A stretch of 48,684 bases of DNA from Octopus bimaculoides (GCF_001194135.2 NC_068987.1:108226309-108274992); one strand, 5' to 3'. Positions 1 to 25,419 are shown, counted from the first letter of the stretch. The notes: generated by a model from the sequence alone, not told the origin. Program-made: numbers and translations.

Positions 1-223
1 ATATATATATATATATATATATATATATACATATACAAAGTTACATAAAACGTACACAGACGTATATATTATTATATGTATGTGCTTATATATGTATACA
101 TTAATATGATGCATACTTATATATGGTATCCAAGAATAATTAAGGTGTTAGTGTGTGTGAGCGTGTGCGTGCATGGTATGGATGCATATATTTATAAATA
201 TACTATTTTTTAACAACTAACCG

Positions 224-323
224 GTAATCATTGTTTGCTCAGGTGGAAGAGCTGAACGCATTCTACTCAGAAACTTTAGTATGCGGTAACGAAGGTTCGC
301 ATTCCTCAGCAGATGATGATTAC
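224..323 (+). ncRNA. Panhandle Pol III ncRNA candidate, copy A (vault-RNA-like)
   Basis: TATAAA 193-198. 5' GTAATCATTGTTTGCTCAGG pairs with 3' CCTCAGCAGATGATGATTAC (19/20 including 3 G-U). A-box TTGCTCAGGTGG, B-box-like GGTTCGCATTCC, TTTT at 329-332. Confidence 0.7.
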
Positions 324-784
324 AAAAGTTTTATTTTAGTGTTTGTGTTATTTATATAAAAATATTGATGCATTTTCATTGAAAATTATAAAAGTGAAAT
401 GAAATTAATTTTTCGCCATTTGTTTTGGAATAATTAATAACTTAAAATAGGCAAGCCAAATTTAGAATCAAATATCTCGCAAATGAACGACGTTTTATAA
501 TATTGCGGTTACCCACAATATTCTGAAAGATTTCGTTAATTTTTTTCATTATTAATAATAATTAAAGGACAATAACCGAACATTAAAACTCTTAGTAGCA
601 TAGGTAACCGATTTTCCCAGAGAGTTCTACTTCCATTCGATTTGGAATAATAATTAAACTATCCTTTCTATTTTGTATAATATTTACATAGGTTTGTATT
701 TTGTATCACAGTTACACGTCGAATTGTAATATTACAAATTATAACACTAGTTTGAAAGAATTTGCATATACTAAAAAACAAATT

Positions 785-890
785 CTGGCAACCATTATTT
801 CTGAATGAATACGAACTTTCCTTGCAGAGTGATAAAAATACCAATGAGAATGCCATTGTTTCTTCCTCCGTGGTAAACATTGCTTAACAG
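785..890 (-). ncRNA. Panhandle ncRNA family copy A2 (degenerate stem, possible pseudogene)
   Basis: Minus strand: TTTATAAA (914-921), GGAGGAAGAAAC A-box-like end, AGTTCGTATTC, 3' AATAATGGTTGCCAG followed by a T-run. Terminal pairing has several mismatches. Confidence 0.5.
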
Positions 891-1279
891 TTCATCGTAC
901 ATAAAATAGCACATTTATAAATATATGAATCTATATATATATATATATATATATACATAATAGTTACAGAGGCAACAGATATTAGGGCAAGGTCAAAAAT
1001 GTCGAGTCATTATTTTGAACAAAAAAATCAAATTATTACTGCTGTTTCTGAGATATCCCAGAGTATGGTATATTCTGTCACACCCTGGGATATCCCAACA
1101 ACAGCTGTAAAACTTTGATTTTTTCAGTAATACTGATGTATATGATTTGAGATGTTTGCTTTGCCTTAACGTTTGTTGTCCTCTTTAATATAGGAAATCT
1201 GCAATGACTCCATAACTACCGTCATAGCTACAACATTAAAGCCCTATTAATATTACAGTTTCTAAAATTCGTTTGAAAG

Positions 1280-1764
1280 ATATCGCACATACTAACGAAA
1301 AAATAATAATAATAATGGGTAGCCCTTATTACTAATGGATTACGAACCTGCATTTCAGAGTATTAAACTCTGGAACTAGAAGGTGCTTGTCTCTTCCATC
1401 TTGGCAAACAAGAGTTACTTGACATCGTTAAGCAAAATAGTTTATTATACATATATTCATTCGTAACTATGCATACACACATACACACAGACACACACAC
1501 ACACAGACACACACACACACACAGACACACACACACAGACAAACACTGCATGACGTATATTGCACATGTACATGTATATAAATGCATGCAATATGCTTGT
1601 GAGCGTACATACGATCGCATTTATCTATATAAATATGTGTCAATTACATTTGATTGGGTATGCGGGCGTGTGTGTCCATCAGTGTTTGGATGTTGTATGG
1701 GAGTATGCATACGTAAATGCGTGTGCAGATAGGTGTATATATGTATATATATATATATATATAT
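1280..1764. repeat. Segmental duplication (paralogue at ~5660-6124)
   Basis: Colinear from copy B/F through GATCGCATTTATCTATATAAATATGTGTCAATTACATTTGATTGGGTATGCGGGCGTG to the gap edge. Confidence 0.85.
1319..1418 (-). ncRNA. Panhandle ncRNA family copy B
   Basis: Minus: GTAACTCTTGTTTGCCAAGATGGAAGAG...CAGAGTTTAATACTCTG...GGTTCGTAATCC...AATAAGGGCTAC. TATAATAAA upstream (1441-1449); T6 downstream (A-run 1298-1303). Confidence 0.65.
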
Positions 1765-2927
1765 NNNNNNNNNNNNNNNNNNNNNNNNNNNNNNNNNNNN
1801 NNNNNNNNNNNNNNNNNNNNNNNNNNNNNNNNNNNNNNNNNNNNNNNNNNNNNNNNNNNNNNNNNNNNNNNNNNNNNNNNNNNNNNNNNNNNNNNNNNNN
1901 NNNNNNNNNNNNNNNNNNNNNNNNNNNNNNNNNNNNNNNNNNNNNNNNNNNNNNNNNNNNNNNNNNNNNNNNNNNNNNNNNNNNNNNNNNNNNNNNNNNN
2001 NNNNNNNNNTATATATATATATATATATATATATATTCATATGAGTTTGTGCATAGACATGTATATGTATGCTGTATATTTTATGTATGTGAAGGTATGA
2101 GCAATTGTAGCAAGACCTTGGATCTGTAAAATGAATTTAGAAGTATTTTAACTTTGAATTTTTAATTTGTAATCATTAATTTAATAAGGGATATTTACAT
2201 TTATTTATAGATTGCTTATGCAATTATTTGGCAAATTAGCTGCTTCTTCCGCTGTCTAGTCAGCTTACTGATTAGGTGCACTGGATGGTAGACCAGGGGT
2301 CTCCAACTTGGGCCATATTCCCTAGTTATTACTTCCCGTAACCCATAATTCCACATTCCTACTTTAAAAAAAAATTATGGACCATTTTCACACAAAGCGT
2401 CTTATTTTTTAAACGTCCAAATAGGTTTCTTTCTTAATATTTTTTCCATAATATTTATTTTTGTAATCTAACATAGTGTCCCAAGCGTCTTCGAGGCCCT
2501 TACAAAATATACCGCTGTCCCATCTTAACGAGTATAACAGTTAAAATAGCCGGTCTTTTGGTTTTCAATTTCAACTCACCAATTATAAAGAACGCTGTTT
2601 TCTGTTTCCTTTATATATATACATAGACATATTTGCATATATATATATATATATCTATATATATATATATATATATATGTATGTATGTATGTATGTATGT
2701 ATGTATGTATATATATCCATATACATAGATACATAAAGCGTACACAGGCGTATATATAATGATATGTGCGTGCGTATATATGTATACATTAATATTATGC
2801 ATACTAATATATGGTATCCAACAATAATTTGGGTGTAAGTGTATGTGTGTGCGTGTGTGCATACGAGTGTGCGTGCAAGGAATGGATGCATATATTTATA
2901 AATATAGTATTTTGTGACAGCAAACCG

Positions 2928-3027
2928 GTAATCATTGTTTGCTAGGGTGGCAGAGCTACCCGCATTCTACTCAGAAAGTTTAATACGCTGAAACGAAGGT
3001 TCGTATTCCTCAGCAGATGATGATTAC
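2928..3027 (+). ncRNA. Panhandle ncRNA family copy C
   Basis: TATAAA 2897-2902, A-box TTGCTAGGGTGG, GGTTCGTATTCC, 19/20 terminal pairs, ATTTT downstream. Confidence 0.7.
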
Positions 3028-23514: not shown

Positions 23515-23550
23515 GGCATCCATATAATACCTGCGCTAACAATAGTTACC
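23515..23550 (-). pseudogene. Internally deleted copy M of the panhandle ncRNA family
   Basis: Minus: intact upstream module (GGTATAGATGCATATACTTATAAATAGACTATTTT), then GGTAACTATTGTTAGCGCAGGTA fused to TTATATGGATGCC, a 3' arm like that of copy D. Confidence 0.55.
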
Positions 23551-23855
23551 TGTTCGGCTTTCACAAAATAGTCTATTTATAAGTATATGCATCTATACCT
23601 AAGCACACATACACACACACACACACACAAATACACACTGACCGCATTGCATGTATGACTACTATATAACTACATATAAGTATGCATAAATACATGCATA
23701 CTTACATACATACGTACACGCAGATATGAAGGGGTTTTTTTCTCTGGAGGGGGACGATTTTATGCTCCATTATTAGACTATTTTCCTTAGTCATGGCACG
23801 GCGATCGACAGAAGCACGATGGTTATACAAAGATACCATTATTATTATTATTTAC

Positions 23856-24030
23856 AGGATGGTCTTAACCCGTTGATGTGGAAGTTTCCAAGGATAGTCT
23901 GGACAGGTTTCTCTCTGAGATACCAGAGGAACCCACATCGAGGCAGGTAACCCCAAAAAGAGCAGCTTCTTCCAACTCGCTACTAGACCAGGAACACTAT
24001 CGGAAACAACACCGAGTAATTACAGGTTGT
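23856..24030 (+). mobile_element. LINE ORF2 extreme C-terminal fragment
   Basis: VDVEVSKDSLDRFLSEIPEEPTSRQ..RAASSNSLLDQ resembles the LDxFLxxIPDxP..AAxSNSL end of CR1/L2-like ORF2. Confidence 0.6.
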
Positions 24031-24447
24031 GTTCTAGCATCATATCTGCACGAGGCTGAAACCAGTAAAAGGAAATACATATATATAGCTATATTAAGAC
24101 TGACAGCGAGATATATATAGAAGCAACACAGAATCTTAACACGTAATTGCCAACCAGGTGTGGCGTCCTATATGGGACAGTGATACTGACGTTTATAGAC
24201 CCATGCTGGCCTGTCTTCTCGCCGGCTATCAACACATATTCTGTGTCGGATTAGTATTTGCGAGATGAGGTCATCGCTCCTATAACTAGCCTTACGTGAT
24301 ACACACGGTCTCGAGTTTCTGTGTGGTTACAACTCCTCAGCGTATATATATATACATATATATATGTTATGGACCATCATATATTATAAACCCGTTGATG
24401 CATCATATCCGCCCGAGGCTGAAACAAGTAATATATATATATATATA

Positions 24448-24534
24448 TGTGTGTGTGTGTGTGTGTGTGTGTGTGTGTGTGTGTGTGTGTGTGTGTGTGT
24501 GTGTGTGTGTGTGTGTGTGTGTGTGTGTGTGTGT
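24448..24534. repeat. (GT)n microsatellite
   Basis: Directly visible. Confidence 0.95.
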
Positions 24535-25107
24535 CACCTAAATATTATCGATGAACGCTGCATTATTCGTGTAGCAGAAGCCCAGTATATCTTTCCTTCT
24601 TAGTCGGTGAAGCACTATATACTCCATAATGAATATGTTTCCGATGTCAAGAAGAGATTCTGCAATAACATAGCCGTGTAAAAGCGTTCCTCAACCCATT
24701 CTCTATTAGGAAGGATGAAGTCCCTTAGGAAATGTATCTGCAGTCTGTCATCGAGATTGGTTAACGCTTCTATCATTTTTTGGAGGCTCTTCTCAAATGA
24801 ATTCCCATGAAATGTAAAACCTGGTAAGCCATATGTACTTCATATTGATTCTTTTTTTGTCTCATGTAAACTACTAGAGACTCATAGAATGAGTTTGAGT
24901 GTGACAGCAGGACAACAATTACATATTGCAAACCGTGGAGCATATATTTCATCATATATTTATCTATCCTTTCTGTTTTGGATAACAGTAAAATTGCTTT
25001 CGTTTTTGTGTTTTTTCTTTACATCACAGTTACATAGCTACCTCTAATATCACATCTTATAACACTATTTTGAAATATTTTGCACATACGAAAAAAAAAT
25101 ATATCAC

Positions 25108-25209
25108 GGTAGCCATTATTCTTCAAGGAATACGAACCAGCATTGCATAGATTCGAATGCTCTAAATATAATTCGTTCGGTTCTATCACCTGCGCTAACA
25201 ATGGCTACC
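25108..25209 (-). ncRNA. Panhandle ncRNA family copy N
   Basis: Minus: GGTAGCCATTGTT pairs 13/13 with AATAATGGCTACC. A-box TAGCGCAGGTGA, GGTTCGTATTCC, TATAAA (25235-25240 rc), T9 downstream (25091-25099). Confidence 0.75.
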
Positions 25210-25419
25210 TGTTCGTTGTTTGCAAAATAGTCTATTTATAAGTATATGCATCCATACCCAAGCACACACACACACGCTCTCACCGCATTGCATGTATTAC
25301 TATTGTATAAATACATATAAGTATGCATTAATATATGCTTCACGTTGTCTTAGCTTTCAATTGATGCCACCACGCTGGCCAGGCGATCAGCGTTACAATC
25401 TCTGATGAGGCTTAACCAT

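Follow-up and report, generated by a model that had tools for sequence, protein, structure and literature searches.

Small Pol III RNAs of similar build

Vault RNAs (Rfam family RF00006) are 80-150-nt transcripts of RNA polymerase III (Pol III) that carry internal A and B boxes and an upstream TATA; their 5' and 3' ends form a panhandle around a variable centre, and their genes lie in small lineage-specific clusters (PMC8824774). At sequence level, most of these features recur, the A box in a loose form, in a cluster of ~170-bp units found in a 48.7-kb stretch of Octopus bimaculoides DNA, here called the window and analysed over its whole length of 48,684 nucleotides. The units probably constitute a locally amplified Pol III gene family, with a hybrid promoter, for an undescribed and probably lineage-specific noncoding RNA (ncRNA) of ~105-120 nt. 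The family appears to be built like vault RNA or rodent 4.5SI RNA while being a member of neither.

A second point of reference is provided by the rodent 4.5SI and 4.5SH RNAs, lineage-specific Pol III transcripts of 94-98 nt that have A and B boxes and derive from sequences like those of tRNAs or short interspersed nuclear elements (SINEs) (PMC7279448). Upstream, their genes have a TATA-like box at -31/-24, which is functional, and additional sites near -50; hybrid promoters of this type, in which such a box accompanies the A and B boxes, are known from 4.5SH, 4.5SI and the other non-tRNA type 2 genes (PMC7279448). Multiplication occurred at the DNA level, giving three genes within 4-40 kb or a tandem repeat of 4-5 kb (PMC7279448). 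Y RNAs and nematode stem-bulge RNAs are also Pol III RNAs of ~100 nt, with a long end-to-end helix, clustered paralogues and variable loops. The promoter of the selenocysteine tRNA gene is composed of an upstream TATA, a proximal element and an internal B box, the A box contributing little.

Small structured Pol III RNAs outside tRNA, 5S, U6 and 7SL are almost uncharted in lophotrochozoans. Only a handful of vault RNA candidates exist for this group (PMC8824774), and both vault and Y RNAs have been reported as undetectable in schistosomes (PMC2770079). An earlier preliminary description of the present locus, which proposed a molluscan vault RNA cluster, held that systematic surveys cover deuterostomes only; this is out of date, as lophotrochozoan homologues have been cited (PMC2770079). 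A literature search found no paper linking cephalopods to Pol III ncRNAs or to vault RNA.

Copies of the unit

The window contains 13 full-length and two truncated copies, all between 173 and 25259. These 15 places were read directly; alignment A1 comprises the copies with 62 nt of upstream flank, and alignment A2 the bodies only. A covariance model (R1), a step suggested in the preliminary description, was built from the bodies alone, leaving the upstream module out, and with filters off it recovered the 13 full copies from the whole window at 100-116 bits. Apart from the truncated copy 17011+, at 21.9 bits, no further credible match was obtained there, and the remaining 23 kb (25.3-48.7 kb) is devoid of copies. 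A weak match at 8357-8410 belongs to an unrelated palindromic repeat and was rejected as a gene copy. The units are given below with their R1 scores, the z values of the panhandle fold against dinucleotide shuffles and, for some, the mismatches to the promoter pattern.

173..332, + strand: c224p, subfamily 1; promoter 173-222, body 223-332 including a T4 terminator; 109 bits; z -4.85; promoter with 1 mismatch, TATAAA at -30; a perfect D-arm-like GCTCAGGTGGAAGAGC retained
773..938, - strand: c785m, subfamily 2, probably degenerate; 101 bits; panhandle lost, z +0.73; internal T5; last base of the B box A, not C
1298..1469, - strand: c1319m, subfamily 3; 107.5 bits; z -2.21; central hairpin CAGAG-TTTAATA-CTCTG
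2877..3041, + strand: c2928p, subfamily 1; 115.1 bits; z -4.82; promoter with 1 mismatch
4378..4536, + strand: c4428p, single-member subfamily; 100.3 bits; z -2.63
5100..5268, - strand: c5116m, subfamily 3; 100.9 bits; z -3.84; promoter with 3 mismatches
5677..5851, - strand: c5700m, subfamily 3; 111.7 bits; z -4.65; T16 terminator
7148..7312, + strand: c7199p, subfamily 1; 108.1 bits; z -2.82; promoter with 0 mismatches; inside segment 6961-7908
7746..7911, - strand: c7758m, subfamily 2, probably degenerate; 103.5 bits; panhandle lost, z +0.25
13894..14053, + strand: c13944p, subfamily 4; 115.7 bits; z -3.99; internal T5; panhandle backed by compensatory CACUCU/AGAGUG changes
16961..17049, + strand: truncated copy 17011+; promoter with 3 mismatches and the first ~38 nt of the body; 21.9 bits
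18827..18993, - strand: c18842m, subfamily 3; 110.5 bits; z -3.54; T12 terminator; internal T4 in the 5' arm
22421..22580, + strand: c22471p, subfamily 4; 113.7 bits; z -6.42; inside segment 22397-23059
23529..23600, - strand: truncated copy 23515-; promoter with 2 mismatches and the first ~22 nt of the body
25091..25259, - strand: c25108m, single-member subfamily; 101.3 bits; z -4.77; T9 terminator; promoter with 1 mismatch

In the first truncated copy the rest of the body is deleted, and 17049-17216 aligns to the 3' flank of c18842m; in the second, 23529-23697 aligns to 25188-25338. Beyond the window, the promoter pattern had 0 matches in metagenome, prokaryote-genome and viral collections, which hold no animal genomes and are silent on the distribution of the family. 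The same limit applies to the body pattern, whose 14 metagenome loci are all due to chance, the covariance model finding none.

A shared gene layout

The 13 full copies share a common layout. A (TG)n-rich stretch is followed by the conserved module GTATGGATGCATATATTTATAAATATACTATTTTG, ~14 variable bases and the body. The latter starts with G(G)TAAC and continues with a loose A box TTGCCAAGGTGG, the motif (G/A)(G/A)AAGAG, a variable centre and the block GGTTCGTATTCC, after which come a 3' arm complementary to the 5' arm and a T run. When the promoter module was searched alone over the window with up to 3 mismatches, 10 matches were found against 0.00 expected. In every case a body, or the stump of one, follows at exactly 14 nt, both truncated copies included, and the remaining five promoters align in A1.

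Within the module, TATA(A/T)A is located at -30/-31. Adjoining TATAAA is the conserved block GTATGGATGCATAT (-47 to -34, e.g. 7151-7164), inside which an octamer-like ATGCATAT is found. The latter is one base off the octamer ATGCAAAT, which vertebrate type 3 Pol III promoters have in their distal elements. Directly upstream of the module, at about -75 to -52, most copies have a (TG)n/(GT)n microsatellite (examples at 4340-4380, 5270-5300, 19000-19060 and 25260-25275), which appears to be part of the ancestral duplicated unit.

Inside the body, the A box resembles TTGC(C/T)(A/C)AGGTGG in most copies and is degenerate in subfamilies 2 and 3. The block GGTTCGTATTCC is nearly invariant, and its B-box GTTCG lies at +73 except in two of the 13 copies, which have it at +72 or +74. 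The first T run, T4 to T16 in length, follows the 3' arm by 2-20 nt and places the terminator at +106 to +125. The body measures ~105 nt, and 109-125 nt separate the start from the end of the first T run. At sequence level, each full copy falls within the 80-150 nt of vault RNA genes and shares their box B, their upstream TATA and a terminator formed by a T run.

These results bear out much of the preliminary description, which had listed 13 near-full-length and 2 deleted copies in the places given above, each with a TATA module, a body of ~100-105 nt, a B-box-like block, oligo-T and a 3' arm that pairs back onto the 5' end; direct reading and the alignments agree with it on all 15. Its R-R-A-A-G-A-G after the A box is read as (G/A)(G/A)AAGAG in the alignments, and its suggestion that the copies are Pol III genes is supported by the fixed geometry of TATA, B box and terminator.

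A covarying terminal helix

In A2, RNAalifold joins the 5' and 3' ends of the 13 bodies by a 14-bp helix in which 89.5% of cells are paired. Compensatory double changes are found in 8 of the 14 helix pairs, for instance AU to GC, CG to UA and GU to CG. The observed covariation score and percent paired were reached by 0 of 500 shuffles, the count of pairs changed on both sides by 2 of 500, and slid registers were all far worse (32-62% paired). The panhandle folds in 11 of the 13 copies, with z values of -2.2 to -6.4.

Further helices were considered for the interior and are not clearly maintained. About 66-70% of cells allow the A-box region to pair with the bases that follow the B box, an arrangement that the preliminary description gave for vault RNAs; alternatively, the B box may sit in a T-arm-like hairpin with an 8-nt loop (66% paired). 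These two arrangements are mutually exclusive, and each is available in only some two thirds of the cells. In c224p a D-arm-like helix is perfect (GCTC-AGGTGGAA-GAGC), but over all copies it is paired in 44% of cells. No consensus structure was found for the centre in the alignment of the 13 bodies.

Subfamilies and conservation

The 13 copies are divided into six subfamilies, two of them with a single member. Identity amounts to 78-88% within subfamilies and 59-69% between them. Mean pairwise identity, computed by region on an alignment with 300-bp flanks, is distributed unevenly along the unit:

Flanks: 0.40-0.50
Promoter, -47 to -28: 0.82-0.89
5' arm: 0.74
A-box region: 0.61-0.68
Centre: 0.53-0.66
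B box: 0.94
Terminator: 0.80

Promoter, B box and terminator are the most conserved regions and the flanks stand at 0.40-0.50, which indicates selection rather than recent copying. These old duplicates keep promoter, B box, terminator and spacing, and they keep the helix by compensation while the centre drifts. Such a pattern of conservation and covariation reads as the signature of a transcribed, structured RNA gene and not of neutral repeats, and the part under structural selection is the terminal helix with its predicted 3' overhang.

Spread by segmental duplication

Self-comparison reveals homology that reaches 400-950 bp past the units. The following segments are paired:

1-935 and 6961-7908: 88% identical, with two genes
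1280-1762 and 5660-6124: 82% identical
13870-14536 and 22397-23059: 81% identical
4387-4924 and 22430-22982: 70% identical

Direct repeats that might represent target-site duplications (TSDs) do not exceed shuffle expectation on either side of the body or the promoter. On their 3' side the copies are followed by T runs, and neither A-rich tails nor tails derived from long interspersed nuclear elements (LINEs) are present. Since the flanks are homologous over such distances and TSDs and tails are lacking, the family is judged to have spread by segmental DNA duplication. The preliminary description had likewise preferred DNA duplication to retroposition, and the TSDs or tails typical of a SINE or a miniature inverted-repeat transposable element (MITE), which it named as contrary evidence, were not found at the copies in the window.

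The assembly of the window includes 18 runs of N. None lies inside or touches a unit, the nearest gap being 218-2659 bp away, and each unit is therefore continuous sequence. Unit order and spacing across gaps, as well as copy number, are not guaranteed, and gaps could hide more copies; the leftmost unit starts 173 bp from the left edge of the window. The gaps at 1765-2009 and 6125-6867 begin at homologous ends of duplicated segments (1280-1762 and 5660-6124, 82%), each after (TA)n. They mark microsatellites inside a higher-order repeat, and further gene copies may hide there; another gap in the cluster lies at 8285-8308. Paralogous segments are 67-91% identical, far below the near-identity of assembly duplicates or haplotigs.

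A proposed mode of expression

If the copies are genes, TFIIIB/TBP would be positioned by TATAAA at -30 together with the adjoining block GTATGGATGCATAT, and TFIIIC would bind the nearly invariant B box at +72/+73, aided by the loose A box at about +13 to +24. Transcription is predicted to start where the panhandle has its base, at G(G)T, a position that agrees with a TATA distance of ~30 bp and an A-box distance of ~12 nt. Termination would take place in the T4-T16 run and leave a short single-stranded oligo-U tail of the type bound by La. The resulting RNA of 105-125 nt would possess a terminal helix of 14 bp (up to ~20 bp) around an interior of ~65 nt, in which a centre that evolves fast would lie beside the B-box hairpin. 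This helix may confer nuclease resistance and serve as a handle for export or protein binding, while the six diverged centres could recruit paralogue-specific partners.

A wider proposal is conceivable, with the balance leaning slightly against it: the family may be a new abundant class of Pol III small RNA in this lineage (probably cephalopod or mollusc), in which six diversified paralogue types share a helix-binding protein and differ in specificities set by their centres. It would then be a convergent protostome counterpart of the RNAs of vault, Y and 4.5S ribonucleoproteins.

Alternative explanations

Part of the evidence weighs against a working Pol III gene family. The panhandle is lost in both subfamily-2 copies, c785m (z +0.73) and c7758m (z +0.25), and these together with the two truncated copies indicate decay in part of the cluster. 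Conservation of the A box is weak (0.61-0.68). Internal T4-T5 runs occur in 3 of the 13 copies, and the bodies show no significant avoidance of such runs (3 where 5.8 would be expected, P about 0.1). Local gene conversion could, moreover, inflate the conservation of short blocks.

The same observations, along with the 44% pairing of the D-arm-like helix and a repeat-rich, gap-rich and gene-poor neighbourhood, would fit a decaying array of duplicated tRNA-derived relics that is no longer transcribed, or only incidentally so, and that owes its shared blocks to gene conversion or recent duplication. This explanation is unlikely. Subfamilies are 59-69% and flanks 40-50% identical, yet promoter, B box and terminator stand at 0.80-0.94, and spacing is fixed to the base. 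Compensatory double changes in 8 stem pairs are a product of neither conversion nor neutral decay.

A Pol III gene family of its own kind is also preferred over strongly diverged host vault RNA genes, whose RNA would associate with TEP1 inside MVP vault particles, a reading that is less probable still than decaying relics. In its favour, size, A and B boxes, upstream TATA, panhandle, variable centre and a small multi-gene cluster fit textbook vault genes (PMC8824774), vault RNAs have little sequence in common even among metazoans (PMC3762200), and the A-box region is able to pair with the bases right after the B box in the proportion given above. Against it, Rfam 15, Vault RF00006 included, produced no match at gathering score over the whole window, and nothing at E<=10 either on the copies in 1-8200 or in a 131-nt search around the best copy. 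The scans returned only low-complexity noise from microRNA (miRNA) models, none of it on the copies. This negative result carries weight because RF00006 already includes vault RNAs from a mollusc (Lottia gigantea), an annelid (Helobdella robusta) and a flatworm (Macrostomum) (PMC8824774).

The most conserved part of the Lottia and Helobdella vault RNAs is box A with the flanking TTACTTCG (PMC8824774). A search of the window for AGCTCAGNGGTTACTTCG with up to 3 mismatches gave 0 matches, and TTACTTCG occurs in 0 of the 13 bodies, the sequence in its place being GGTGGAAGAG, i.e. (G/A)(G/A)AAGAG. Human vault RNAs carry the motif as well. The A-box region here is closer to the D arm of a tRNA, as shown by GCTCAGGTGGAAGAGC in c224p, than to the vault motif, and the terminal helix has about twice the length of that in vertebrate vault RNA. 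As the defining motif is missing, the family is not filed under vault RNA; vault RNA identity, the headline of the preliminary description, is not supported, though the build is the same. Its fallback, that the copies form a new class of Pol III RNAs with this build and a tRNA origin, fares better: the new class is the reading favoured here, while the tRNA derivation is no more than suggested by the boxes, the D-arm-like helix being poorly paired.

Other known families fit less well. ARAGORN detected 0 tRNA or tmRNA genes in the window and Rfam no tRNA, and a tRNA or selenocysteine tRNA was rejected on these grounds and on the incomplete pairing of the D-arm-like (44%) and T-arm-like (66%) helices. 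The preliminary description had regarded a confident match to another known RNA family as evidence against its proposal, and neither Rfam 15 nor ARAGORN supplied one; the comparison of the copies with the Vault and Y RNA models that it suggested was run within Rfam 15, and neither matched. It is very improbable that the copies are homologues of Y or stem-bulge RNAs binding Ro60 through the terminal helix: size, the long helix of both ends, upstream TATA and clustered paralogues agree, and Ro is widespread, yet Y RNAs are unfound in most invertebrates (PMC2770079), but Y_RNA (RF00019) and every other Rfam family remain unmatched in 1-8200 and in one copy even at E<=10, and vertebrate Y genes have purely external promoters, whereas conservation here is highest in an internal B box. 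Moreover, the helix in A2 lacks both a conserved bulged C and a Ro site resembling GGUCCGA.

Equally little credence is given to a mobile element, whether a tRNA-derived SINE, to whose head the A and B boxes and ~105-nt body would correspond, or a MITE with the two 14-nt arms as terminal inverted repeats (TIRs), in a window where other interspersed repeats abound: the same 50-bp upstream module accompanies every copy outside the transcribed or TIR-bounded part, TSDs are not above chance, A-rich or LINE-derived tails are missing, homology runs hundreds of bp into both flanks, the other 23 kb has no copies though a true interspersed repeat is present there in at least 8 pieces, and the arms covary where transposase-binding TIRs would be conserved. 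SINE membership was rejected on the lack of TSDs above shuffles, the T-run 3' flanks, the homologous flanks, the co-duplicated upstream module and the copy-free 25.3-48.7 kb; MITE membership on the covarying arms, the missing TSDs and conserved sequence that continues for 50 bp beyond the 'TIR', and does so at just one end.

Neighbouring sequence

The window is AT-rich, with many (TG)n/(TA)n stretches, interspersed repeats and remnants of Tc1/mariner elements, and no recognisable gene was found in it. An interspersed repeat of at least ~350 bp is present in both orientations at 72-90% identity, has internal (CA)n/(TA)n and includes a part with GGGACTGAACCCGGAACC and GTTCGTAAGC. It looks like a tRNA-derived SINE and may resemble an abundant octopus SINE. 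Searches of published text for the repeat and for the motifs of the gene copies brought up only unrelated primers matching one 12-mer, the other strings giving nothing. Its pieces and the other elements are as follows.

10343-10591, 10709-10902, 25568-25919, 28706-28875, 29014-29177, 29459-29607, 32846-33257, 45978-46154 and 47770-47964: interspersed repeat
1014-1170, 3113-3346 and 8357-8622: palindromic MITE-like element (..AAGGCAAGGCAAACATCTCAAATCA..TGAGATGTTTGCCTTGCCTT..), between the RNA genes
10062-10314 (-), 10802-11107 (-) and 33682-33930 (+): fragments of a Tc1/mariner-type transposase, no intact gene
39204-39456: tandem array of a 12-base unit (..MYVCMYVC.. when translated), 86% self-identical at a shift of 85 bases

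The palindromic element gives weak matches to plant miRNA models and to R1, and its copies at 3113-3346 and 8389-8622 are 91% identical. The Tc1/mariner fragments have a weak match to HTH_Tnp_Tc3_2, the only one that Pfam gave, and a 57%-identical metagenome protein carrying PF01498; two metagenome proteins matched the Tc1-like open reading frame (ORF), and the fragment at 33682-33930 (+) resembles a mariner helix-turn-helix by eye only. A homologue search with a LINE-like ORF of the window found none, and two ORFs of the window had no entry on record.

Significance and comparison with known systems

If expressed, the copies would add a new RNA family to annotation, where Rfam at present gives nothing for them. 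They would also document for this lineage a hybrid Pol III promoter consisting of TATA, a proximal block and a B box, which could aid in finding other Pol III genes. Furthermore, they would provide a clean case of a tRNA-like element turned into a multi-paralogue ncRNA family via segmental duplication, with covariation visible within a single locus. The cluster is also a warning that panhandle RNAs with A and B boxes should not all be called vault RNA.

Compared with vault RNA, which shares the build, the family has a much longer terminal helix (14-20 bp), the vertebrate vault RNA helix being about half as long. The B-box loop is one base longer here (GGTTCGTATTCC), 15 copies are gathered in 25 kb, the box A and TTACTTCG motif of Lottia and Helobdella is missing, and Rfam finds no match. 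Y RNAs and stem-bulge RNAs resemble the copies in their long helix and clustered, loop-variable paralogues, whereas the copies have an internal B box and neither an Rfam match nor a bulged Ro60 site. The hybrid-type profile of the selenocysteine tRNA promoter fits the conservation profile of the copies; these are not tRNAs, however, as cloverleaf helices are not maintained, an anticodon arm is absent and ARAGORN and Rfam give no match.

The rodent 4.5SI and 4.5SH RNAs appear to be the closest match in gene organisation and probable origin. They belong to a different phylum and have no sequence relationship to the copies, in which the terminal panhandle is the conserved structure and six deeply diverged subfamilies are held in one cluster.

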